From: Macrostomum lignano
Lineage: Eukaryota
NCBI GenBank assembly: GCA_002269645.1
Contig: NIVC01000839.1
Coordinates: 1 to 64,000 of the forward strand
Reading direction: 5' to 3'
DNA: 64,000 nt
Each line of letters begins with the position of its first letter. Positions within the stretch are counted from its first letter, which is position 1. The translations under genes were made by a program, and so were the position numbers. This document shows positions 1 to 63,556 of this stretch, one piece after another. The notes under the pieces were generated by a model. The model saw only the letters and a list, made by a program, of their open reading frames with translations, made no database searches and was not told the origin of the DNA.

Positions 1-792
1 ATAATGGGATTCTCGATTTAGATATGGGATTCTCGATTCGGATAATGGATTCCGATTTAGAATCATGGGATTCTCGATTCGGGATAATGGGATTCCTGAT
101 TTAGAATCATGGGATTCTCGATTCGGGATAATGGGATTCCTGATTTAGAATCATGGGATTCTCGATTCGGGATAATGGGATTCCTGATTTAGATCAAGGG
201 ATTCTCGATTCGGGATAATGGATTCTCGATTCGGGATAATGGGATTCTCGATTTAGAATTCATGGGATCTCGATTCGGGATAATGGGATTCTCGATTTAG
301 AATCATGGATTCTCGATTCGGGATAATGGGATTCCTGATTTAGAATCATGGGATTCTCGATTCGGATAATGGATTCTGATTTGGGATCATGGGATCTTGA
401 TTCGGGATAATTGGATTCTCGATTCGGGATAATGGATTCTCGATTTGGGATCATGGGATTCTCGATTTGAGATCGTGGGATTCTCGATTTGAGATCGTGG
501 GATTCTCGATTTGGGATCGTGGGATTCTCGATTTTGAATCATTGTATTCTTGAGTTGGGAATTTTTTTTTGGATCATGGTTTTAGAATTCGGTTTTTTAA
601 TTCGAATCTTAGGATTCTTGATTTCAGATTTTTGGGATCATGGGATTTTAGAACTCGGATTTTTAATTGGAATCTTAGAATTCTTGATTTCGGAATTTTT
701 GGGATCATGGGATTTTAGAATTCGGATTTTTAATTGGAATCTTAGAATTCTTGATTTGGAATTTTTGGGATCATGGGATTCTCGATTTAGTA
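1..792. repeat. Minisatellite, about 20-21 bp unit (GGGATTCTCGATT-CGGGATAAT/TAGAATCAT), degenerating rightwards
   Basis: Tandem units read directly; ORFs here are repeat translations. Confidence 0.9.
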
Positions 793-978
793 TGTGTGAA
801 ACTGACATTTCTTTAATGTTCAAAATTTTGGCTTCAAATTTGTAATTTTTTTCGGTTTTAGACAGGTTAAACTTACTGTTCCTGAAAGTTGAATACAGTA
901 GAGTTTGAGTCAATATCAACACAACGCCAGTGCATAAACAGTTATTGCTCTTATCGGTGAATTAGTATGTATTTATAG

Positions 979-1030
979 GACGCTCCGCTGCGCAGACCGA
1001 ATCTAGTGCACCTGCACTCATGTTGCTTCG
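979..1030 (+). CDS. Candidate micro-exon (RSAAQTESSAPALMLLR), possibly an upstream exon of the BH3 gene
   Basis: GC-rich 52 nt between tttatAG (977-978) and GTacag (1031); its phase-2 end fits the acceptor at 8095. No homology support. Confidence 0.2.
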
Positions 1031-1127
1031 GTACAGTTGTGCATCTTAGAGGGTTTGTTGTTTCTTTTTTTCATAGCGCATTTGAAGTGCGTGCACAGCT
1101 GTGTGCTATAGTTGACTGTACCAGGCC

Positions 1128-1862
1128 CAGGGGTTGGCAAACTCCGGCCCGTGGGCCCCATGCCTTCGCGTCCTTTGAAATTTCACAATAGGAATCTGGC
1201 CCGCTTAAGGTTGATGTCTCTTCTCTCAGCTCTCTTCTCTCTACCCTCTTTTCTCTCCTCTCTCCTGTACTCTCTCCTCTCTCCCTAATCCTCTCTACCC
1301 TCTTTCTCCCCCTAATCTCTTCTCTCTCTCCTCTCCTTTCTTCTCTCCCCTTTCCTCTCTTCTCTCTCTCCCTCCTCTCTTCTCTCTCCCCTGTTCTCTT
1401 CTCCCTACTCTCTCCTCTCTTCTTTCTTCCTCCTGTCTCCTCTCTCGTCTCTTCTCTCTTCCCTCCTCTTTCCTCTTTCCTCTCTCCTCTCTAACCTCTC
1501 CTCTCTCCTCTTTACCTTCTTCTCTCTCCTCTCTACCCTGTTCTCTCCCCTACTCTCTTCTCTCTCCCCTACTCTCTTCTCTCTCCACTACTCTCTTCTC
1601 TCCCCTCTCCCCTCTCCTCTCTTGTCTCTCCCTCTCTACTCTACCCGCTTCTCTTCTCTCTTCCCTCTCTCTTCCTCTCTCATCTCTTCTCTCATCCCTT
1701 ATTTCATCTCATATCTTCTCTCCTATCACTCATCCCTTCTTTTCTAATTTCTCTCTCCTCTATTCAAACTATTTTTCTCTCTTATCTGGCCCGCATCCAT
1801 GAGGTATAGATTAATTATTTTTCAGGCGCTTTAAGGTAAAAAAAAGTTGTTTCGACCCCTTT
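1128..1862 (+). mobile_element. Degenerate hAT (Charlie-like) MITE with CT-rich interior
   Basis: Left end CAGGGGTTGGCAAACTCCGGCCCGTGGGCC, internal CTGGCCCGC motifs at ~1196 and ~1786, right end AAAAGTTGTTTCGACCCCT; no clean TSD. Confidence 0.55.
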
Positions 1863-2309
1863 GTCTGGTCTACTCGTACATATATAGACGGTGTTAAGGG
1901 ACTCTGTAGTACTATTAATTATTTGGCTACGGGCATATTCACTGTTGCACTGTTGTTCGTTGATAGGAGCGTATATTTCGAATTTTCCCATTTTATTAAT
2001 AATACCAGCTAGCTGAACGTGTGTCCGTGCAGCTATGTAAATATGAATGTGTGGATCTAGTACTGCAGTACTATTATTTTATTGTCTAGACTAAAGACCT
2101 TTCAGTGTATATAGTATAGTGAAACTGAATGACTCATTAGGAATATCGCTTTCTACGATATGTATATATGTACGTGTAATACTCGTCGTCTGAAGTATCT
2201 GCGCAATAGGTGCAATCGTAAGTATTAATATTCAGCAATTCTTTAATAAATTGGTTACTAGTTAGCTAATTAAACGCGCACAAGGGGCGCCACAAGGGGC
2301 GCACAAGAG

Positions 2310-5270
2310 GTGACTAGATAGGGAACAGAGTCACTAGATAGGGAACAGAGTCACTAGATAGGGAACAGAGTCACTAGATAGGGAACAGAGTCACTAGATG
2401 GAGTGCAGAGTCACTAGATGGAGTGCAGAGTCACTAGATGGAGTGCAGAGTCACTAGATGGAGTGCAGAGTCACTAGATGGAGTGCAGAGTCACTAGATG
2501 GTTCACAGAGTTACTAGATGGATTGCAGAGTCACTAGATGGATTGCAGAGTCACTAGATGGAGTGCAGAGTCACTAGATGGATTGCAGAGTTACTAGATG
2601 GATTGCAGAGTTAGCTCGTACTAGATGGAGTGCAGAGTCACTAGATGGTGTGCAGAGTCACTAGATGGTTCACATAGTTACTAGATGGATTGCAGAGTTA
2701 CTAGATGGAGTGCAGAGTCACTAGATGGATTGCAGAGTTACTAGATGGAGTGCAGAGTCACTAGATGGTGTGCAGAGTCACTAGATGGATTGCAGAGTTA
2801 CTAGATGGAGTGCAGAGTCACTAGATGGTTCACATAGTTACTAGATGGATTGCAGAGTTACTAGATGGAGTGCAGAGTCACTAGATGGATTGCAGAGTTA
2901 CTAGATGGAGTGCAGAGTTACTAGATGGAGTGCAGAGTCACTAGATGAATTGCAGAGTTACTAGATGGATTGCAGAGTCACTAGACAGGGCACAGAGTCA
3001 CTAGATGGAGTGCAGAGTCACTAGATGAATTGCAGAGTCACTAGATGGAGTGCAGAGTCACTAGATGGATTGCAGAGTCACTAGATGGTTCACAGAGTTA
3101 CTAGATGGAGTACAGAGTCACTAGACAGGGCACAGAGTCACTAGATGGAGTGCAGAGTCACTAGATGGATTGCAGAGTCACTAGATGGTTCACAGAGTTA
3201 CTAGATGGAGTACAGAGTCACTAGATGGAGTGCAGAGTCACTAGATGGTTCACAGAGTTACTAGATGGAGTACAGAGTCACTAGATGGAGTGCAGAGTCA
3301 CTAGATGGTTCACAGAGTTACTAGATGGAGTACAGAGTCACTAGATGGATTGCAGAGTCACTAGACAGGGCACAGAGTCACTAGATGGAGTGCAGAGTCA
3401 CTAGATGGAGTACAGAGTCACTAGACAGGGCACAGAGTCACTAGATGGATTGCAGAGTCACTAGACAGGGCACAGAGTCACTAGATGGAGTGCAGAGTCA
3501 CTAGATGGATTGCAGAGTCACTAGATGGTTCACAGAGTCACTAGATGGAGTGCAGAGTCACTAGATGGAGTACAGAGTCACTAGACAGGGCACAGAGTCA
3601 CTAGATGGATTGCAGAGTCACTAGACAGGGCACAGAGTCACTAGATGGAGTGCAGAGTCACTAGATGGATTGCAGAGTCACTAGATGGTTCACAGAGTTA
3701 CTAGATGGAGTACAGAGTCACTAGATGGATTGCAGAGTCACTAGACAGGGCACAGAGTCACTAGATGGAGTGCAGAGTCACTAGATGGAGTACAGAGTCA
3801 CTAGACAGGGCACAGAGTCACTAGATGGATTGCAGAGTCACTAGACAGGGCACAGAGTCACTAGATGGAGTGCAGAGTCACTAGATGGATTGCAGAGTCA
3901 CTAGATGGTTCACAGAGTCACTAGATGGAGTGCAGAGTCACTAGATGGAGTACAGAGTCACTAGACAGGGCACAGAGTCACTAGATGGATTGCAGAGTCA
4001 CTAGACAGGGCACAGAGTCACTAGATGGAGTGCAGAGTCACTAGATGGATTGCAGAGTCACTAGATGGTTCACAGAGTTACTAGATGGAGTACAGAGTCA
4101 CTAGATGGAGTGCAGAGTCACTAGATGGATTGCAGAGTCACTAGATGGTTCACAGAGTTACTAGATGGAGTACAGAGTCACTAGATGGATTGCAGAGTCA
4201 CTAGACAGGGCACAGAGTCACTAGATGGAGTGCAGAGTCACTAGATGGAGTACAGAGTCACTAGATGGAGTACAGAGTCACTAGATGGAGTACAGAGTCA
4301 CTAGATGGAGTGCAGAGTCACTAGATGGATTGCAGAGTCACTAGATGGTTCACAGAGTTACTAGATGGAGTACAGAGTCACTAGATGGATTTCAGAGTCA
4401 CTAGACAGGGCACAGAGTCACTAGATGGAGTGCAGAGTCACTAGATGGAGTACAGAGTCACTAGATGGAGTACAGAGTCACTAGATGGAGTGCAGAGTCA
4501 CTAGATGGATTGCAGAGTCACTAGATGGTTCACAGAGTTACTAGATGGAGTACAGAGTCACTAGATGGATTGCAGAGTCACTAGACAGGGCACAGAGTCA
4601 CTAGATGGAGTGCAGAGTCACTAGATGGAGTACAGAGTCACTAGACAGGGCACAGAGTCACTAGATGGATTGCAGAGTCACTAGACAGGGCACAGAGTCA
4701 CTAGATGGAGTGCAGAGTCACTAGATGGATTGCAGAGTCACTAGATGGTTCACAGAGTTACTAGATGGAGTACAGAGTCACTAGATGGAGTGCAGAGTCA
4801 CTAGATGGTTCACAGAGTTACTAGATGGAGTACAGAGTCACTAGATGGATTGCAGAGTCACTAGACAGGGCACAGAGTCACTAGATGGAGTGCAGAGTCA
4901 CTAGATGGATTACAGAGTCACTAGATGGATTGCAGAGTCACTAGACAGGGCACAGAGTCACTAGATGGATTGCAGAGTCACTAGATGGATTGCAGATTCA
5001 CTAGACAGGGCACAGAGTCACTAGATGGATTGCAGAGTCACTAGACAGGGCACAGAGTCACTAGATGGATTGCAGAGTCACTAGACAGGGCACAGAGTCA
5101 CTAGATGGATTGCAGAGTCACTAGACAGGGCACAGAGTCACTAGATGGATTGCAGAGTCACTAGACAGGGCAGAGTCACTAGATGGATTGCAGAGTCACT
5201 AGACAGGGCACAGAGTCACTAGATGGATTGCAGAGTCACTAGACAGGGCACAGAGTCACTAGATGTAGTG
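2310..5270. repeat. 20-bp minisatellite (CAGAGTCACTAGA plus a variable 7 nt), roughly 145 units
   Basis: Strict 20-bp period visible in the sequence. Confidence 0.97.
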
Positions 5271-5594
5271 CAGAGGAATTGCTACCAGATCACACTGGTT
5301 CTAGAGCTTATATCTCCATGAGTAAGCAGAGTAAGTACCATTGTCTATAGCGTCTGTTTGTATAAGCAGTGAGCACAAAGGCAGGCAGACTCATAAATGC
5401 TTTGAATAAATTTCAGCTAGAAGCAGGTGTCACTCTGGGGTCGTCTCCGGTCACGTGATTAAGCTGTTTATGAATAGGCGGCACTGGAACGACAGTTGGA
5501 AATATGCAAATGAAATAAAATAACAGAGAAGCGAAGCAAAGTTGACAGGAGCGTCTTTGTTTTAACTCCCTCTGACCCTTCATTTAAAAGCGTT

Positions 5595-5745
5595 GCGGGT
5601 TGTTAAAATTCTTTACCTCAAGGGCCTGCTAAACAATCCAGCTCATGGCTGCGGGCCAGTTGAGGGAGGAGAGGAATAGAGGAGAGAGGGAGAGAATATT
5701 AGAGATAAAAGGAGAGAAGAGATGAGAGAGAGGGGGAAATTCGAA
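5595..5745 (-). mobile_element. Partial inverted copy of the 1128-1862 hAT MITE family
   Basis: Reverse complement aligns by eye to 1740-1850 (CTGGCCCGCAGCCATGAG vs CTGGCCCGCATCCATGAG; TTTACCTCAAGGGCCTG vs TTTACCTTAAAGCGCCTG). Confidence 0.5.
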
Positions 5746-6099
5746 ATGCAGACACAGAAAGCCAGACTGAGACGTAGTTATAATTCCTAAACAGTGAGCG
5801 GCCTATAGTTTTGTCCAACGTGCCGAATAGCAATGTTTGTTTTAACAATGTAGTAAAGCTTTTATCTATCTTGGGTTATACTATATCGTGACCTTGACAT
5901 GGTTATAACTGCGACATTGTTTATAACAGTTATTATGGCTGATGTTTGTTAATTTTTGGGCGGTAGATAGTAGGATTCTGTGATTTTTAAGCATAAATTT
6001 GACCCCAAATCAATGGATGATAAGTTAAGGTGACCGCGATAAAAATGTGACCTCTCGTTTATGGCTCCCGAGATGTGATCTCGATTGGTTTTAGGAAAT

Positions 6100-7930
6100 T
6101 GCATCAATTGAAATCTAAGAAAATGATCCAAATAGATTTTAAGAAATGACCCCAATCGATTCTAAGAAATTTCACCAATCGATTCTAAGAAATGTCACCA
6201 ATTGGATTCTAAGAAAATGATCCAAATAGATTCTTAGAAATAACCCAAATCGTATTCTAAGAAAATTATCAAAATAGATTCTTAGAAATAACCCAAATCG
6301 TATTCTAAGAAAATGATCCAAATAGATTCTTAGAAATAACCCAAATCGTATTCTAAGAAAATTATCAAAATAGATTCTTAGAAATAACCCAAATAGTATT
6401 CTAAGAAAATGATCCGAATAGATTTTTAGAAATAACCCAAATCGTATTCTAAGAAAATGATCCAAATAGATTCTTAGAAATAACCCAAATCGTATTCTAA
6501 GAAAATGATCCAAATAGATTCTTAGAAATAACCCAAATCGTATTCTAAGAAAATGATCCAAATAGATTCTTAGAAATAACCCAAATAGTATTCTAAGAAA
6601 ATGATCCGAATAGATTTTTAGAAATAACCCAAATCGTATTCTAAGAAAATGATCCAAATAGATTCTTAGAAATAACCCAAATCGTATTCTAAGAAAATGA
6701 TCCAAATAGATTCTTAGAAATAACCCAAATCGTATTCTAAGAAAATTATCAAAATAGATTCTTAGAAATAACCCAAATCGTATTCTAAGAAAATGATCCA
6801 AATAGATTCTTAGAAATAACCCTAATCGTATTCTAAGAAAATGATCCAAATAGATTCTTAGAAATAACCCAAATAGTATTCTAAGAAAATGATCCGAATA
6901 GATTTTTAGAAATAACCCAAATCGTATTCTAAGAAAATGATCCAAATAGATTCTTAGAAATAACCCAAATCGTATTCTAAGAAAATGATCCAAATAGATT
7001 CTTAGAAATAACCCAAATAGTATTCTAAGAAAATGATCCGAATAGATTCTTAGAAATAACCCAAATAGTATTCTAAGAAAATGATCCGAATAGAATTTTA
7101 GAAATAACCCAAATCGTATTCTAAGAAAATGATCCAAATAGATTCTTAGAAATAACCCAAATCGTATTCTAAGAAAATGATCCAAATAGATTCTTAGAAA
7201 TAACCCAAATAGTATTCTAAGAAAATGATCCAAATAGATTCTTAGAAATAACCCAAATAGTATTCTAAGAAAATGATCCAAATAGATTCTTAGAAATAAC
7301 CCAAATCGATTCTAAGAAATTTCACTAATCGGATTCTAAGAAAATGTCAAAATCACCCCAATCGATTCTAAGAAATTGTATCAATTGAAATCTATGAAAT
7401 GACCCCAATCGATTCTAAGAAATTGCATCAATTGAAATCTAAGAAATGACCCCAATCGATTCTAAGAAATTTCACTAATCGGATTCTAAGAAATTGCATT
7501 ATCAAATTCACAGAAATGATCCCAATCAATTCCAAGAAATGACCCTAATCAATTCCAAGAAATAATTTTAATCAATTCCAAGAAATGACCCTAATCAATT
7601 CCAAGAAATAATCCTAATCGATTCCAAGAAATGACCCTAATCAATTCCAAGAAATGACCCTAATCAATTCCAAAAAATAATCCTAATCAATTCCAAGAAA
7701 TGACTTTAATAAATTCCAAGAAATGACCCTAATCAATTCCAAGAAATGACCCTAATCAATTCCAAGAAATGACCCTAATCAATTCCAAGAAATGATCCCA
7801 ATCAATTCCAAGAAATGATCCCAATCAATTCCAAGAAATGATCCCAATCAATTCCAAGAAATGATACCAATCAATTCCAAGAAATGATCCCGATCGATTC
7901 AAAGAAATGATCCCGATCGATTCAAAGAAA
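6100..7930. repeat. AT-rich satellite: 48-bp higher-order unit of two 24-mers (~6180-7310) grading into a 21-22 bp unit
   Basis: 16-aa periodic translation FGLFLRIYLDHFLRIR; AATCAATTCCAAGAAATGACCCT units at right. Confidence 0.93.
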
Positions 7931-8095
7931 TGATCCCAATCAATTGAAGGAAAAACCTCAATATATTTGAATAAAAGACCTTAATGTAATATTCTCTAAC
8001 AGATTCCGAAGATGAATTATTAATAAGTACCCGCTATGGATTTCTTGATTAACTCATTCCCCACCTACAATCCCCCCATTCTGCTCAGCTCGCAG

Positions 8096-8324
8096 TCTTT
8101 TGAACCAGCGGGAGCCGCTGCCAGACCTTCTACTGGAGACCACCGTAGTTGACATCCGGGTGCGCAGCCAGTCTGTGCCAGTGATGCCTGAAGATGCTCA
8201 ACAGTTGCGCCTGCAAATGCGACGCGAAGAGAGCGTCGAAATGGTTGCTATGAGACTTCGACACATTGGTGACGAGATTGATAGCAGCAGGTCGTCTGTG
8301 CAAAATCGCAGCGAAGTTCTCGTG
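8096..8324 (+). CDS. Internal exon of a BH3-motif (Bcl-2 family, probably BH3-only) protein
   Basis: Pyrimidine tract with AG at 8094-8095 (alternative 8087-8088), donor GTAAGT at 8325; encodes RVRSQSVP and VEMVAMRLRHIGDEID matching the BH3 core L-x-x-I-G-D-E. Confidence 0.7.
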
Positions 8325-8389
8325 GTAAGTTTTTTTAGACCTAAAATTCCTTAAAAAATTATATTCATTTCTCTCCTTTAGTATGATTG

Positions 8390-10195
8390 TATTCTGAGGT
8401 CTATTTTAGTAGCTTAGTTTAGCCTGAGGTCCATTTTAGTTTAGCCTGAGGTCCATTTTAGGTTAGCCTGAGGTCCATTTAAGGTTAGCGTGAGGTCCAT
8501 TTTAGGTTAGCGTGAGGTCCATTTTAGGTTAGCCTGAGGTCCATTTAAGGTTAGCCTGAGGTCCATTTTAGGTTAGCCTGAGGTCCATTTTAGGTTAGCG
8601 TGAGGTCCATTTAAGGTTAGCCTGAGGTCCATTTAAGGTTAGCCTGAGGTCCATTTTAGGTTAGCCTGAGGTCCATTTAAGGTTAGCCTGAGGTCCATTT
8701 AAGGTTAGCCTGAGGTCCATTTAAGGTTAGCCTGAGGTCCATTTTAGGTTAGCCTGAGGTCCATTTAAGGTTAGCGTGAGGTCCATTTTAGGTTAGCGTG
8801 AGGTCCATTTAAGGTTAGCCTGAGGTCCATTTAAGGTTAGCCTGAGGTCCATTTTAGGTTAGCCTGAGGTCCATTTTAGGTTAGCCTGAGGTCCATTTAA
8901 GGTTAGCCTGAGGTCCATTTTAGGTTAGCCTGAGGTCCATTTAAGGTTAGCCTGAGGTCCATTTAAGGTTAGCCTGAGGTCCATTTAAGGTTAGTCTGAG
9001 GTCCATTTAAGGTTAGCCTGAGGTCCATTTAAGGTTAGCCTGAGGTCTATTTTAGGTTAGCCTGAGGTCCATTTAAGGTTAGCCTGAGGTCCATTTAAGG
9101 TTAGCCTGAGGTCCATTTTAGGTTAGCCTGAGGTCCATTTAAGGTTAGCCTGAGGTCCATTTAAGGTTAGCCTGAGGTCCATTTAAGGTTAGTCTGAGGT
9201 CCATTTAAGGTTAGCCTGAGGTCCATTTAAGGTTAGCCTGAGGTCTATTTTAGGTTAGCCTGAGGTCCATTTAAGGTTAGCCTGAGGTCCATTTTAGGTT
9301 AGCCTGAGGTCCATTTTAGGTTAGCCTGAGGTCCATTTAAGGTTAGCCTGAGGTCCATTTTAGGTTAGCCTGAGGTCCATTTAAGGTTAGCCTGAGGTCC
9401 ATTTAAGGTTAGCCTGAGGTCCATTTTAGGTTAGCCTGAGGTCCATTTTAGGTTAGCCTGAGATCCATTTAAGGTTAGCGTGAGGTCCATTTTAGGTTAG
9501 CGTGAGGTCCATTTAAGGTTAGCCTGAGGTCCATTTAAGGTTAGCCTGAGGTCCATTTTAGGTTAGCCTGAGGTCCATTTTAGGTTAGCCTGAGGTCCAT
9601 TTAAGGTTAGCCTGAGGTCCATTTTAGGTTAGCCTGAGGTCCATTTAAGGTTAGCCTGAGGTCCATTTTAGGTTAGCCTGAGGTCCATTTAAGGTTAGTC
9701 TGAGGTCCATTTTAGGTTAGCCTGAGGTCCATTTAAGGTTAGCCTGAGGTCCATTTAAGGTTAGCCTGAGGTCCATTTTAGGTTAGCGTGAGGTCCATTT
9801 AAGGTTAGCCTGAGGTCCATTTTAGGTTAGCCTGAGGTCCATTTTAGGTTAGCCTGAGGTCCATTTAAGGTTAGCGTGAGGTCCATTTTAGGTTAGCCTG
9901 AGGTCCATTTAAGGTTAGCCTGAGGTCCATTTTAGGTTAGCCTGAGGTCCATTTAAGGTTAGTCTGAGGTCCATTTAAGGTTAGCCTGAGGTCCATTTAA
10001 GGTTAGCCTGAGGTCCATTTTAGGTTAGCCTGATGTCCAATTTAGTTTAGCCTGAAGTTCATTGTAGTTTAGCTTGTGGTCCATTTTATCCATTTTAGGT
10101 TGTTAGCCTGAAGTCCTTTTAGGTTAGCTTAAGGTTCATTTTAGGTTAGCCTGGGGTTCATTTTAGTTCACCCTGAGGCTTATTTTAGTTTAGCC
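8390..10195. repeat. 22-bp minisatellite GAGGTCCATTT(T/A)AGGTTAGCCT, roughly 75-80 units
   Basis: Direct reading. Confidence 0.96.
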
Positions 10196-10584
10196 TGGCA
10201 CTAGTATATATAGCGTGACTAAAATCAATTTTAGAATCCTGAAATGAAAGGTCCAGTTTTGAGTACAGTGCACTCAACTATCAGTTGCCAAGGCTGAATT
10301 TTTATCAAAACAGGCCCTGTAGGTCTTTGTCTCAACTCGTACTTAGTTTTGTTTATTATTATTAGAATATTGCTCCAGCTCAAGGTCATGTGAAGGTCAT
10401 CGTCTCAGATGCCCTCACATGCCTCCACGATTCGATGCTTCTTATGTGCAATAATAATAATCGTAAAACAGGAAATAAAAAACTCTCATCAACTGGAGTC
10501 TTCTTTTAGTATCCAGGGCCCCAAATAGTATCTAGGGCCTTCATATTCTAGAAGGATAACTTCAAAATCCTCTTCTATAGATCA

Positions 10585-10790
10585 GGCATGAGATTATCCG
10601 AATCTTCTCTCACCCTGAGACACGAGTGAGATTATTAGAATCTTCTCTCACCCTGAGACAGGAGTGAGATTATCAGAATCTTCTACTCACCCTGAGACGG
10701 GAGTGAGATTATTAGAATCTTTTCTCACCCTGAGACACGAGTGAGATTATATGAATCTTCTACTCACCCTGAGACAGGAGTGAGATTATC
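10585..10790. repeat. 38-39 bp tandem repeat, about 5 copies, with internal dyad (GTGAGATT...AATCTTCTCTCAC)
   Basis: Direct reading. Confidence 0.85.
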
Positions 10791-11399
10791 TTAACATAAA
10801 GAGCGGTGCTGTAATAAAATTGACCTAATTGGTCAGAATTCGGAGTTTCCTCCTGCTACAGAAGTGTTTATTGAATGATGAGGCTGACATACACGAAGTT
10901 GTTTTAATAAAGATAAGAAAGATGACAACGTTAGACAGTATGCGTCACAGCTTCTCTTCCCCTTGCCAAACTAAACCCGACCCTGTCATGCATGTCACGG
11001 TCACGTGCCAATGCCTGGATTTAGTTTAATTCCTTGCAATATTGACTATATTAATACTGAATACTTTTTTTATGAAGAGATTGCGGCAGTTGTGTATACT
11101 CGTATTCTGATTGGGTTGCTATGCCGAGAGAGAGGGAGAGGGGAGATAGATACTAGACTGGCCCTGTTTTTATGAATGAGCGATTGGGGAAGAGAGTGAG
11201 GGGTGGTAGGAGAGAGAGGAGCGAGAGGAGGGTTCGCGCCCACCCCCACCTCTTCAGCGCCTCAGCAGCGAGACACGTGACTTTGTTTTATACTCGGTAT
11301 TTAAAAAAATAATGCTTTATTACAAGTGCTCAAGGTAAAAACCAGGGGGGGGGGTGGTTTAGTATTGCCTTTGTTGGCCCCACCCCTCAAATTTCCTAC

Positions 11400-11560
11400 A
11401 GGTTCTAAACTTTACCAGACCTGAGGTGCGGCGCTACCTCAACTACCCCAGCTAATGCTGGCACCCATTTTACAGCTGGGTGAACTGAAGCAATGCAGAG
11501 TTAAGCGTCTTGCTCAAGGACACAATTTGTTCCTTAGTGGGTCGAGAATCGAACCCCCGA
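11400..11560 (+). mobile_element. CORE-SINE remnant
   Basis: 11464-11524 CCCATTTTACAGCTGGGTGAACTGAAGCAATGCAGAGTTAAGCGTCTTGCTCAAGGACACA matches the recalled MIR/CORE domain; followed by GAATCGAACCC. Confidence 0.7.
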
Positions 11561-13096
11561 CTGACCTTCTAAGAAACTGGAAGTTTCCCGTACTTTTTTA
11601 GTTAATCAAAAACACGTATAAAAAGACATGCGGTATCGGGGATTCTATGTGTGGCATTGGGGAGTTCATTCGGTGCAACATTGTGGCGGTTTTTCGTGCT
11701 GAGAGAGAGAGAAGAACTGCAGGAACCAGTGGGAGAGGGAGATAAACCGCCCGCCCACTATTTCTCTCCCAATGCATGACTGACCTTCCATTGCTCCTTC
11801 GTTGTCATTGGCTGATTTTTTATTCCATATGTGGGCTGGTTGGACTGAAGTCAGCTGACCCAAAATATTTCGTAGCTTATAGACTTGAATAAGCATGGGT
11901 TCTTTTCTTAGACTTGTGAATAAACAAGTTCCTGGCGTCCTTTATTAATTATTGAATTCTTGATTATGGCTATTGTGACATTAATATTTATAAGTATAAT
12001 ATGTTTATCTGAAGACACTGAGAATTAACTCTAGCAGTGATTGGTGACACACAGGGTGCTCTAGCAGTGATTAGGTTGATTCGCTAAAAAAATGCATACC
12101 TGTTACCAACGCGTAGTTCTGTATATTCTTGCTTCTAAATTTAATAACAAAATGTTTTTTGTATAAACGAACGTAATGTACGAGCGTATATTTGGCGTCT
12201 CAATTGTTGATCTTAGCTAAGATGACTGACTGTGCTTGGCCCCTGGATAAAAGTTTGTTTGCGCTGGAAACAGCAGCTAAGCTGGGTGTCCTGTCGTTTG
12301 CCCGGTCTCCCCCTCTTCGCGACATGGCGTCAGGGTCTATTTTTGGAAATGGCCTTTTTGACAATTTTAGTTTGCATATATGCGTATGCATAGTATAGCC
12401 AGAACTAAATGGTTCTGATCTCTAATCTCTTCACGTGGTATATCTTATAGTTATTTAAGTCACCTGATTCTAAGTATCTGCGCTTCATATCTGTAGTGAG
12501 ACTGATGATTTTTAACACTGCGCAAGTCAAGTGCAATGGAAGTCTACCCTCGGGCACACGGCGCACGGGTCCAATACGTGTTGTTTAAATCTGTTAAAGC
12601 TTCTATAGAGTGCTTTGATAAATCCAACTCGTGACTGTAGTGCAAAATTCTTACCTGGAAATGCAATTTTTTTAATCTACTTCCACCTCTGGACCCTGGC
12701 GATAAGATTTGCCTAATACTAATAGTGCGTTATGAAATTCCATATGATACTACTTGCCATGTGTCTTATAAGTAATAAAAAAGGAACATGAATTTTTGGT
12801 TAACAATTTTTTTGTGAATCTGTTGCGAGCTTTAGACAGATAAAAGTTTGTGAATCTGTTTAAATTTTGTTTCTGGGTACTAAGATAAGAACCTTGTATA
12901 ACTTTTACGAGTATTCTCGTGCTTCATTTTTTAGTCCAGCCTCTACATTTATGCTCCTTCCTGTCACTCGCTTTCTCCATCTCTCACTCTGTCCGTCTAA
13001 ATCTTACTCTCTCACTCTCACTCTCTCACTTCCACTCTCTCACTCTCGCTCGCTCCGACTCTCACTCTCACTCTCACTCTCACTCACTCCCTCGCT

Positions 13097-13405
13097 ATGC
13101 AGTTCCAGCGTCTGCGCGGTTACTCGGTGAGCGAGACGGAGCGCCAGGGTCGTTCATCTGGCGACGGCGCCGGCGCCGTTGGAGGCGGCAGCGCCTCGTC
13201 GTACCCGGGCGATCCAATGTCGCACTTCATGCACGACCGTCGCCAGCAGCAGCAACAGCCACAGCGACGTCAGTCGTGGCTCGGCCGAGCCCTGTACACT
13301 CTCTCCGGCGCTGGAATTTCCAGCGAAGAGGCCGAAGAAGATGGCCATGCTGATGCGGATCGAGACGATTATAGTCGGGGATTCGATGGCGGCGAGATGG
13401 ACTAA
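13097..13405 (+). CDS. Small disordered protein (102 aa), or a phase-0 terminal exon starting at 13103
   Basis: GC-rich ORF in repetitive surroundings; RLRGYS and RRQSW basophilic kinase motifs, polyQ, acidic tail; pyrimidine tract plus CAG acceptor at 13100-13102. Confidence 0.6.
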   Translation: MQFQRLRGYSVSETERQGRSSGDGAGAVGGGSASSYPGDPMSHFMHDRRQQQQQPQRRQSWLGRALYTLSGAGISSEEAEEDGHADADRDDYSRGFDGGEMD

Positions 13406-13584: not shown

Positions 13585-14432
<848 letters not shown>

Positions 14433-15619: not shown

Positions 15620-16083
15620 TGTTGGGGGGTCAGATGGGAGCTCTTGGGGGTCAGATGGGAGCTGTTGGGGGTCAGATGGGAGCTGTTGGGGGTCAGATGG
15701 GAGCTGTTGGGGGTCAGATGGGAGCTGTTGGGGGTCAGATGGGAGCTGTTGGGGGTCAGATGGGAGCTGTTGGGGTCAGATGGGAGCTGTTGGGGTCAGA
15801 TGGGAGCTGTTGGGGGTCAGATGGGAGCTGTTGGGGTCAGATGGGAGCTGTTGGGGGTCAGATGGGAGCTGTTGGGGTCAGATGGGAGCTGTTGGGGGTC
15901 AGATGGGAGCTGTTGGGGTCAGATGGGAGCTGTTGGGGTCAGATGGGAGCTGTTGGGGGTCAGATGGGAGCTGTTGGGGGTCAGATGGGAGCTGTTGGGG
16001 TCAGATGGGAGCTGTTGGGGTCAGATGGGAGCTGTTGGGGGTCAGATGGGAGCTGTTGGGGTCAGATGGGAGCTGTTGGGGTG
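15620..16083. repeat. G-rich 20/21-bp minisatellite G4-5TCAGATGGGAGCTGTT
   Basis: Direct reading; units differ only in G-run length. Confidence 0.95.
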
Positions 16084-17798: not shown

Positions 17799-19457
17799 TT
17801 AGGATGCACTGAAAACCTGCAGTTTCCTGTTGCCATGGTCAGCCACCACCAGCTGCTCGCGCGGACCTCCAGTCACCACCGCCAGACCCAATGGCCTGTC
17901 GAACCTGCCGTCTCCGCTGCCGCTCTGTCCCAGAGTCCCCAGAGTCCACAGCAACGACCCGTCGTCTGCAGCCACCGCTCGCACTGAGTAACCCAAAAAT
18001 TCACTCATGAACAGGCGGCCTCTGCTGTCGACGGCCACATCGGCTGGACCAGCAAACTGTTGGAGGCCGGAACGCTGAATCGGGAAGGAGGCGACCAGCT
18101 GCTGGGTGTCGATGCGCACTCTGTGCACCTGCTTATGCTCCCTGTCGATCACCAGAATGCAGTTTTCGTGAGTCGCCAGGTTGCCCAGTGCAGCATGAGG
18201 AAGCTGAGACAGCGTGATGACCGTCTCCATCTGCCAAGTCGCTTTGCTGAATGCAGCAATTTTGTTTCCACTGGACACAAACACGGAGGCTGCGTTGCCA
18301 CCGATTCCCCAGATACCACAGAAACCCCGAATTTGTGGGCGGAGTCGACGAACCGCGCAGCCGCTCAGGTCCGTCACTGTCACTGCGTCACGCTGAGCAA
18401 TGAACAGCAGCTGACGGTCGCAGTGAAGGCCACGAATGTCCTTCTCCCAGTCGATGTCGCAGTGGCACCGCAGCTTCTGTGAGCCGTCCACAGAAAGCAC
18501 CAGTAGATTGTCTCTGTGATAGAATGATGCAAGGATGCAGGGCTGAGGCAGAGCCTCGCTGCCGTCTCCCGCTGAATCGGCGGGAACCACACGGCCTGAG
18601 CGGTCACAAACGAATCCGCTGGTGTCGCTGCACACAGCCAGCCATTTAACATTGCCATCCAGCTTCACCTCGTGACTGAAGACCATCGGATCGAACAGCA
18701 GTCTCTTTCTCTCAGCAGCGGCTATGTCCTCCGATGTCGCGGTCACCGCAGCATCTCTCGACCAGTCGCCCTCTTCACTGCGTCCCGCACAAATGCCGAC
18801 CAGCCGCTCGAGCTGGCCCAGAAGCCGCAGCTGCAGCTCCTCATTGTCGCTCTGGTCTTTGAGCAGCCGCTCTGACCTCTCAAAGTCGGCCTCCAAGTCT
18901 CCAAGCGATTCGTGCATGGACTGGACCAGGCGAAGCAGCTCCGCCATGTCGCCTGCAGCCTCCGCCGTGGCCACCTCCTGCTTGTAGCTGGAGACGTCCT
19001 CGAGGTCCCGCTCGCACACACGCACTGCCTCAAGCACACCTGAGAGCTGGCCCGTCACCCTGCTACGAAACGAGTCGATGTGTTGCTGTACCAAATCGAA
19101 TTTGTGATTGACCTCTTGCAGCTGCTGTTGGATGTCGAGAGCGAGACGACGCAGCGACTCAGCGTCTTGTTTTGGTCGCAGCAGCGCTGCACGGCCAGCT
19201 GCACCTGCTGCGCCTTGTGACTCTTGTGAGTCTTGTGAGTCTTGTGACTCTTGTGAGTAGGCACGCAGCAGCTCTTCGACCTCCTCCTTGAGCTTGAATA
19301 GATTGGCCACATCGACACTGAGGTGTTGACTGCACATGTGGTAGCGGGAGAACGGAGCCACACCGACTGCAGCTTGGTCGCAGATGATGCAGAGAGGAGT
19401 TGGGGAAGCGGGAGGCGCGTCCGAACTCGAGCTGTCGCTGGAGTCTTCAAGGCTCAT
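17799..19457 (-). CDS. Intronless TRIM-NHL-like protein: degenerate Cys/His finger, coiled coil, NHL-type beta-propeller (552 aa)
   Basis: Uninterrupted ORF; CIIC...CSQH, heptad-rich middle, NHL repeats FAGPADVAVDSRGRLFMSE and FDRPLGLAV...VVADHGNRKLQVF. Confidence 0.85.
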   Translation of the reverse strand: MSLEDSSDSSSSDAPPASPTPLCIICDQAAVGVAPFSRYHMCSQHLSVDVANLFKLKEEVEELLRAYSQESQDSQDSQESQGAAGAAGRAALLRPKQDAESLRRLALDIQQQLQEVNHKFDLVQQHIDSFRSRVTGQLSGVLEAVRVCERDLEDVSSYKQEVATAEAAGDMAELLRLVQSMHESLGDLEADFERSERLLKDQSDNEELQLRLLGQLERLVGICAGRSEEGDWSRDAAVTATSEDIAAAERKRLLFDPMVFSHEVKLDGNVKWLAVCSDTSGFVCDRSGRVVPADSAGDGSEALPQPCILASFYHRDNLLVLSVDGSQKLRCHCDIDWEKDIRGLHCDRQLLFIAQRDAVTVTDLSGCAVRRLRPQIRGFCGIWGIGGNAASVFVSSGNKIAAFSKATWQMETVITLSQLPHAALGNLATHENCILVIDREHKQVHRVRIDTQQLVASFPIQRSGLQQFAGPADVAVDSRGRLFMSEFLGYSVRAVAADDGSLLWTLGTLGQSGSGDGRFDRPLGLAVVTGGPREQLVVADHGNRKLQVFSAS

Positions 19458-20716: not shown

Positions 20717-21655
20717 TCACTTTGAGCTCGGCCTCTTCCCTGACGGCCTCTCTGGCTGCTCATCCCGCAGCCCACTGCTCATCTCCGCGAATTCGTCAAA
20801 GGAGATGAAGCCGTCCTGATTGGTGTCCACGGTGCTGAACATCTCGACGATGTCGGAGTCGCTGAGCTCCGCGCTGCCGACGCTGGGCCTCATGGCTTGG
20901 CGCAGCTCCGTCATGGAGATCTTGCCGTCCCTGTTCCTGTCGATGGCGTGGAACAGGTCGCTGATGTCGGAGTCCATCAGGCGAAGACTCAGCTGGGTGA
21001 CTTGCCGCTGCATCATGTCGCAGAATCCGCTGAAGTCCAGGTGACCGGGCGGCGCCTTCGAGTTGGCGTCCCGCTGAGCTTCGATCATGGCGTCCAGCTC
21101 GGACTGAGATGCCGCAATGTTGAGCTGCTGCATCAGCTGGCCGAGATCGCTGGCATCGATGAGGCCGTCTTTGTTGTGGTCGGCCAGCTTGAATGCCGCC
21201 TGCAGCTGGTCTTTTTTGAGCGCGGAGTCTTTGTTCTCCCGCTGCTGGTCATTGCTGACGTTGGAGTCTTTGTTCTCCTGCTGCTGGTCATTGCTGACGT
21301 TGGAGTCTTTGTTCTCCCGCTGCTGGTCATTGTTGACGTTGGAGTCTTTGTTCTCCTGCTGCTGATCATTTTTGACGTCGGAGTCTTTGTTCTCCTGCTG
21401 CTGGTCATTGTTGACGTCGGAGTCTTTGTTATCCCGCTGCTGGTCATTGTTGACGTTGGAGTCTTTGTTCTCCTGCTGCTGGTCATTTTTGACGTCGGAG
21501 TCTTTGTTATCCCGCTGCTGGTCATTGTTGACGTCGGAGTCTTTGTTCTCCTGCTGCTGGTCATTTTTCACCGGGGCGTCACTGCCCGCCCGTCTTTGTC
21601 CGGGTGCAGCCGATGACTTGCTGCTGGCAGCCGCTGTCGGCCTCGTGTGAGCCAT
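20717..21655 (-). CDS. Intronless calmodulin-like EF-hand protein (312 aa) with N-terminal 9 x 13-aa repeat
   Basis: ATG at 21655; EF loops [26 protein letters not shown] and [13 protein letters not shown], second hand degenerate; 39-bp coding repeat 21212-21562. Confidence 0.88.

Positions 21656-28463: not shown

Positions 28464-63556
<35,093 letters not shown>

Follow-up and report, generated by a model that had tools for sequence, protein, structure and literature searches.

The window analysed here is a stretch of 64,000 nucleotides of the genome of the flatworm Macrostomum lignano (NIVC01000839.1:1-64000, assembly GCA_002269645.1). Near its start lie the last two exons of a three-exon gene on the forward strand. 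The penultimate exon encodes a candidate BH3 motif and, upstream of it, a match to kinase and 14-3-3 consensus sequences. A second copy of the gene, the paralogue, is located at NIVC01000032.1:247362-285383 (L001 below) and is represented in GenBank by PAA93152.1 (P0001), a transcript-derived model of 240 aa entered as ‘hypothetical protein BOX15_Mlig023455g1, partial’. The features are listed below, with slashes marking splice junctions; the last three lines refer to the paralogue.

1..8088, forward strand: 3′ part of intron 1, mostly minisatellites, placed by synteny with L001
8089..8324, forward strand: exon 2, the penultimate, BH3-bearing exon (236 nt), with acceptor ctgctcag/CT and donor GTG/gtaagt
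8157..8180, forward strand: RVRSQSVP, read from the sequence and found by regular expression, fitting two consensus sequences, RxRxxS of basophilic (Akt-type) kinases and RSxSxP of mode-1 14-3-3 sites
8232-8285, forward strand: SVEMVAMRLRHIGDEIDS, read from the sequence
8244..8282, forward strand: candidate BH3 core VAMRLRHIGDEID, with hydrophobic V, L, I and I, a small Gly and the invariant Asp
8325..13102, forward strand: intron 2 (4,778 nt), its junction set by the protein sequence of PAA93152.1
8419-10086: 22-bp minisatellite in intron 2
10589-10790: 38/77-bp repeats in intron 2
13103..13405, forward strand: coding part of exon 3, the last exon, with the TAA stop at 13403-13405; FQRLRGYSVSE...RRQSWLGRALYTLSG...GGEMD
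L001 10001-10169: exon 1 of the paralogue, with ATG at 10037 and donor GCT T/gtaagt
L001 19493-19728: exon 2 of the paralogue
L001 27702-28022: exon 3 of the paralogue

Exon 2 lies within a single open frame between stop codons (8046-8354) and is placed between a 23/48-bp minisatellite (6084-7945) and the 22-bp minisatellite (8419-10086) of intron 2. The GC content of the exon block is 55%, against 25–36% in the flanks, and the preceding acceptor is pyrimidine-rich. The 76-aa peptide in the frame of 8097-8324 is LLNQREPLPDLLLETTVVDIRVRSQSVPVMPEDAQQLRLQMRREESVEMVAMRLRHIGDEIDSSRSSVQNRSEVLV; it matches residues 59-134 of the 240 residues of PAA93152.1 with 97% identity (phmmer, E=5.6e-35). The L001 acceptor ctgctcag/CC corresponds to ctgctcag/CT at 8088/8089 of the window. 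Since exon 1 of the paralogue breaks off after the first base of a codon, the other two bases have to come from exon 2, which must start at 8089; they complete a Ser codon (T/CT), and exon 2 ends in phase 0. The original prediction had placed a cleanly bounded exon at 8096-8324. The exon is real and its donor after 8324 is correct, but an acceptor at 8095/8096 is 7 nt too far downstream and loses the frame with exon 1.

After ...NRSEVLV, the sequence of PAA93152.1 runs on as FQRLRGYSVSE...GGEMD, which is the ORF independently picked at 13103-13405; position 8324 of the window is therefore spliced to 13103. The acceptor of exon 3 consists of a long pyrimidine tract followed by ...cgctatgcag/TTC. 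Two further kinase consensus sites are encoded by this exon, the second RxRxxS of the protein at 13109-13126 and RRxS at 13265-13276, together with a short polyQ stretch and the acidic tail. The coding sequence of the paralogue comprises three exons and reaches its stop 101 codons past the BH3-bearing exon. The coding architecture of the gene is established from the paralogue’s annotated model and exons 2 and 3 of the window. The end of intron 2 (atgcag/TTC, 13097-13102) contains an in-frame ATG, so that the last exon mimics a free-standing 102-aa ORF (13097-13405), and the same is seen in the paralogue. The ATG at 13097 was rejected as a start codon, since the transcript model shows an internal splice acceptor there.

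The window and L001 are collinear, with 83–94% identity and very unlike minisatellite copy numbers. Part of the DV1 genome is duplicated, with 180 Mb of duplicated non-repetitive blocks of at least 95% identity, and the two copies are paralogous or homeologous. By synteny, position 1 of the window corresponds to about L001 14685, which places exon 1 (L001 10001-10169) about 4.5 kb beyond the contig start. A tblastn search found no exon 1 in the window because that exon lies off the contig. The window copy has no gene model because the contig start cuts the gene and exon 1 is missing. The gene had been described as unannotated, and this holds for the window copy but not for the paralogue, which was already in GenBank as a hypothetical protein. 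Only RNA-seq transcripts, assembled with StringTie/TACO and de novo, went into the GenBank annotation of GCA_002269645.1, and TransDecoder was used to call the ORFs (PMC5730564). Expressed RNA thus underlies the three-exon structure of the paralogue, the model of which joins the matching exon to the last exon, in agreement with the proposal of a spliced, expressed exon. The gene identifier Mlig023455 is mentioned neither in the literature nor in the M. lignano paper supplements searched.

The Met at L001 10037 is likely to be the start codon of the paralogue, and the ‘partial’ flag of PAA93152.1 probably reflects merely an upstream stop missing from the transcript. Counted from this first Met, the paralogue protein has 228 aa, and the product of the window gene is also about 228 aa long. 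An in-frame genomic TGA lies upstream of the Met, at L001 9986-9988. A TATATATAAA box was observed about 45 nt ahead of the annotated 5′ end of paralogue exon 1 (region L001 9940-10037).

Several other features occur in the window. Minisatellites fill the introns and flanks of the gene (4-780, 1217-1693, 2326-5275, 6084-7945, 8419-10086, 10589-10790, 13585-14432 and 15620-16081); their units include a 20-bp unit present 147 times, a 48-bp unit present 38 times, a 22-bp unit present 76 times, a 21-bp unit present 22 times and CT-rich arrays. They give rise to long spurious ORFs in several frames. An ATG-initiated ORF of 552 aa on the reverse strand (17799-19457), the exact product of which is not on record, has a weak C-terminal NHL-repeat match (E=6.6e-4); its 3′ end is directed towards the 3′ side of the BH3 gene. 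The reverse strand also carries an intronless gene at 20717-21655, encoding a 312-aa protein with three C-terminal EF-hands and an exact GenBank match. The N-terminal half of this protein is composed of NDQQ(Q/R)ENKDS(D/N)V-type repeats; its L001 paralogue has 338 aa and differs in repeat number. The antisense of the EF-hand gene reads as Gly/Trp-rich pseudo-ORFs, which produce false ‘WGR’ matches. On the forward strand, an ORF fragment at 51759-52655 encodes the start of a UCH/USP domain (PF00443, E=3.6e-17) and presumably belongs to a deubiquitinase gene as one of its exons. Scans of the window for tRNAs and Rfam families returned nothing.

Coding constraint, disorder and homology

Exon 2 and the coding part of exon 3 show substitution identities of 96.6% and 97.4%, respectively, between the window and L001. 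The corresponding values are 94.4% for the 143 nt of intron 1 preceding exon 2, 97.6% (with 10 gap columns) for the first 94 nt of intron 2, 93.7% for the last 1000 nt of intron 2 and 92.8% for the 180 nt past the stop. The exons are more alike than three of the four non-coding segments compared (92.8–94.4%), the 94-nt segment of intron 2 being the exception. Indels are many in the non-coding segments; the sole exon indel (18 nt) is in frame and falls in the polyQ run of exon 3. The exons differ by six synonymous and five non-synonymous codon changes, giving a rough dN/dS of about 0.4 from very few events. Four of the synonymous changes, including that in the split Ser codon (TCT/TCC), and two of the non-synonymous ones belong to exon 2. 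Within the BH3 segment, the copies differ at one residue, His in the window and Ser in the paralogue, at the exposed x that separates Leu-Arg from Ile-Gly-Asp. The sequence is under modest coding constraint, which fits a coding, fast-evolving disordered protein. With copies only about 3% diverged, the comparison says almost nothing on the motifs themselves.

The paralogue protein begins with an acidic N-terminus rich in Ser, followed by a basic central part with RVRSQSVP and the BH3 motif, a Gly/Ser-rich stretch, a polyQ run, RRQSWLGRALYTLSG and an acidic tail. Disorder-promoting residues account for 70% of its composition, and its GRAVY value is −0.9. No hydrophobic 19-mer able to span a membrane, and no C-terminal anchor, was found in the whole protein. 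The AF2 model of the paralogue, computed from the single sequence without an alignment, has a mean pLDDT of 43, and none of its residues reaches 70. Helices were modelled at residues 47-60, 105-121 (exactly the BH3 segment) and 172-209 of PAA93152.1. Judged from the AF2 pLDDT and composition, the protein is predicted to be intrinsically disordered.

In a word-indexed search against 5.8 billion protein clusters, the 76-aa exon peptide had no relative, and the same kind of search with the full 240-aa model returned the model alone. Exhaustive searching of 1.84 billion representatives with HMMER gave a single match, PAA93152.1 of M. lignano itself, and none outside the species. According to these searches, the gene is, apparently, Macrostomum-restricted.

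Pfam scans of the exon, the whole protein and window exons 2 and 3 combined (E<=10) found no Bcl-2 (PF00452), BAD (PF10514) or other BH3-only family; the only matches were noise (AIMA-like_N, CHD1-like_C and DUF4005). The Pfam families of BIM, BMF, BID, PUMA, NOXA, HRK, BIK and EGL-1 were not matched. A PDB search with the full paralogue returned only noise (a Tet4 variant, UTP6 and the polyQ of POLG), and no BAD chain was among the PDB matches at E<=10. BH1 (NWGR) and BH2 (GGW) motifs are absent from all six frames of the 64-kb window save in a Gly/Trp-rich repeat.

Linked exons with BH1 and BH2, which would have made the protein a multi-domain member, were looked for by the Pfam scan and the six-frame motif scan, and none was found; the original assignment to a single-BH3 protein stands in this respect. 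The exon might still be thought to belong to a multi-domain gene of the BAX/BAK/BOK type, or to be a chance ORF that lies between satellites and is not coding. It stands alone amid tandem repeats, and its BH3 core resembles those of BAX and BAK. The first of these alternatives is contradicted by the complete coding sequence of the paralogue, which has no BH1, BH2, transmembrane segment, Bcl-2 Pfam match or Bcl-2 fold; neither does the window encode them. The second is at odds with a model derived from transcripts, an indel that keeps the frame and an identity that is higher in the exons. Both candidates were rejected, and together they are hardly credible.

The BH3 motif and the BH3-only class

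A functional BH3 is defined by four hydrophobic residues on one face of a helix and an acidic residue between the hydrophobic positions HP3 and HP4 (PMC9171138). Every one of these positions is satisfied by V-AMR-L-RH-I-G-D-E-I, encoded at 8244-8279. The 26-mer peptide spanning the motif is REESVEMVAMRLRHIGDEIDSSRSSV. In the 13-residue BH3 consensus, HP1 and HP3 are also each followed by a small residue, and the Asp by an acidic one. The core fits both this consensus and a stricter PROSITE-type pattern. A looser core pattern (L, two or three residues, a hydrophobic residue, a small residue, Asp and an acidic or polar residue) has its sole match in the six frames of the window here. A PSSM built from 15 BH3 segments, to be treated as a lead only, scores the exon motif at 12.3 bits, within the range of 7–30 bits obtained for genuine BH3s in leave-one-out scoring.

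Among PDB sequences, the exon is matched best by the BH3 peptide of human PXT1 (8gsv_B, E=0.037; 7wjh_B, E=0.07). PXT1 is a mammalian testis-specific, non-canonical BH3-only protein and a Bak activator; crystal structures of its BH3 peptide with Bcl-xL and Bak have been determined, and the peptide binds all five human pro-survival proteins in vitro (PMC10298792). The PXT1 segment LAMQLRHIGDNID and the worm core VAMRLRHIGDEID are identical at 10 of 13 residues, and all five consensus residues of PXT1 (Leu82, Leu86, Ile89, Asp91 and Ile93) are matched in the worm motif. The likeness is limited to the motif, with a marginal E-value of 0.037, and is gone when the paralogue, with Ser for His, is used as the query; sequence statistics that are lost on one residue change are thin. 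The similarity to PXT1 is one of convergence, not orthology.

In mammalian BH3-only genes, the BH3 is whole on the second-to-last exon in all but BID (PMC7022251). The worm BH3 is wholly on exon 2, the penultimate of three, and exon 3 carries the stop. As with members of the BH3-only class such as BIM, BIK, BAD, EGL-1 and sjC of Schistosoma japonicum, the worm protein is short and disordered, has a single BH3 on the penultimate exon and lacks BH1, BH2 and BH4. It differs from the class in that it has no detectable sequence homology to any described member. BIM, BIK and HRK possess a C-terminal membrane anchor, unlike the worm protein; BAD, BID and PUMA are also without one.

For the strict BH3 pattern, about four matches arise per 10^7 random residues, and 1.5e-4 of the shuffled versions of this protein contain one; a PSSM score at least equal to that of the exon is reached about 80 times per 10^7 random residues. 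At about four strict matches per 10^7 residues, the M. lignano proteome (a few 10^7 residues) should hold several accidental ones. The match is beyond chance for one window, not for the whole proteome.

The principal alternative is that the gene encodes a lineage-specific disordered protein with another role, for example, as a kinase substrate or scaffold, and that the BH3-like stretch has arisen by accident in a charged amphipathic helix that does not engage Bcl-2 proteins in vivo. Somewhat less than an even chance is given to this explanation. The chance rates for both the strict pattern and the PSSM agree with it, as do the lack of homology to any BH3-only family, the lack of orthologues displaying motif conservation and a dN/dS of about 0.4 based on very few changes. 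BH3 patterns have poor predictive value with many false positives (PMC9171138), and ApoL2, a published BH3-like protein, does not act as a BH3-only protein (PMC4611713). An accidental origin is less easily reconciled with a match that exceeds the minimal L-x4-D, fitting 13 of 13 consensus positions and sharing 10 of 13 residues with a structurally validated BH3, or with a context typical of BH3-only genes: a short, disordered, domain-less protein, a penultimate exon and a predicted helix. In a screen of the human proteome, moreover, the 36 most promising of the BH3-like peptides selected on arrays each bound one or more pro-survival proteins in solution (PMC4072508).

The gene is real, and its product is a plausible candidate BH3-only protein supported at the level of the motif, a reading to which about an even chance is assigned. 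The original designation as a BH3-only apoptosis trigger is retained in so far as a complete motif is present, no other BH domain accompanies it and the protein is short, predicted to be disordered and encoded with its BH3 on a penultimate exon; it is a motif-level candidate.

The kinase and 14-3-3 consensus site

RVRSQSVP and the second motif SVEMVAMRLRHIGDEIDS are both present where they had been reported, separated by 17 residues. The candidate phosphorylated Ser is encoded at 8172-8174 (S72 in the 228-aa numbering, the Ser preceding VP in RSQSVP). The octapeptide is identical in the paralogue. It is one of three basophilic-kinase consensus sites in the protein, the others being RLRGYS and RRQS, and it also matches the mode-1 14-3-3 consensus. 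Per 10^7 random residues, the mode-1 14-3-3 motif arises about 364 times and RxRxx[ST] about 3,600 times; the mode-1 motif is also present in 1.75% of shuffles of this protein. What had been put forward as an Akt/14-3-3 site is thus present as a motif match, and a motif match only, of a kind that arises in about 2% of shuffles.

The worm protein resembles BAD in having a kinase and mode-1 14-3-3 consensus upstream of the BH3 (RVRSQSVP versus RGRSRSAP of BAD, as quoted in the original prediction), in its further RxRxxS and RRxS sites and in lacking a membrane anchor. It differs in spacing, the worm site being 28 residues before the BH3 Leu and the BAD site about 15, and in the replacement by Gly of the regulatory Ser within the BAD BH3 (RRMSDEF); it also has no match to PF10514 at E<=10. 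BAD homologues have been reported from deuterostomes (among fish, from the coelacanth and zebrafish), and BH3-only candidates are described as ‘potentially present’ in Lophotrochozoa. The label ‘BAD-like’ can be kept only as an analogy, as neither Pfam nor the PDB gives BAD homology and the intra-BH3 Ser is replaced by Gly. Regulation of the BAD type, in which an AGC kinase would act on S72 and 14-3-3 capture would keep the protein inactive, is speculative, drawing on one motif match, and is regarded as unlikely.

Proposed function and its significance

The Bcl-2 system of flatworms, as described in schistosomes and planarians, has three parts: pro-survival Bcl-2 proteins, a pro-apoptotic effector and BH3-only proteins. 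BH3-only proteins have been shown biochemically in Schistosoma japonicum, and mitochondrial outer-membrane permeabilisation (MOMP) and cytochrome c release in planarians. Among effectors, flatworms appear to keep only BAK (PMC11463336). BLAST searches seeded with EGL-1, schistosome sjC or mammalian proteins do not cross phyla (PMC8998228), so an orphan BH3-only gene in Macrostomum is as expected. A literature search found no BH3-only protein described for M. lignano or Macrostomum. The exon itself is not new, its paralogue being in GenBank; what appears to be new is that it is read as a BH3-only candidate.

Groove binding, killing activity and phospho-regulation are properties that we infer for the protein. 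According to the proposed mechanism, the BH3 of the disordered protein would fold into an amphipathic helix in the groove of the worm’s pro-survival Bcl-2-like proteins and/or BAK. The four pockets would be occupied by V96, L100, I103 and I107 (numbered on the 228-aa protein), and the conserved Arg of the groove would be the partner of D105. Survival proteins would thereby be neutralised and/or BAK released or activated, leading to MOMP and mitochondrial apoptosis. The three kinase consensus sites may provide control by a survival kinase or 14-3-3, analogous to that of BAD.

The motif could also serve binding to Bcl-2-fold proteins for a non-apoptotic end, such as a Beclin-1-like control of autophagy or metabolism. 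Bcl-2 proteins do bind BH3-like motifs of non-apoptotic regulators, Beclin-1 among them, and the polyQ run, the acidic tails and the several kinase sites suggest a signalling hub. Beclin-type proteins, however, are long, with folded domains and a BH3 split across exons, whereas the worm protein is short and domain-less and has its BH3 on one exon; a non-apoptotic role of this kind is considered quite improbable.

BH3-only proteins are hard to find beyond vertebrates and nematodes, and few invertebrates therefore have a known upstream trigger of mitochondrial apoptosis. If the apoptotic BH3-only reading is true, the gene would represent an independent flatworm BH3-only lineage, having no sequence relationship to described members, in a phylum where the class is known. 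If it is refuted, the gene would become one more documented false BH3-like motif. M. lignano is a regenerating, stem-cell-rich animal with transgenesis, RNAi, irradiation protocols and an annotated genome, which makes a 13-residue motif and a defined Ser testable. Should the 14-3-3 site work as well, kinase gating of a BH3 would have arisen outside deuterostomes. The protein would then be a protostome BH3-only protein with its killing helix gated by a survival kinase and 14-3-3, a convergent BAD-type link from Akt and growth factors to mitochondrial apoptosis; the likelihood of this is rated as distinctly low.
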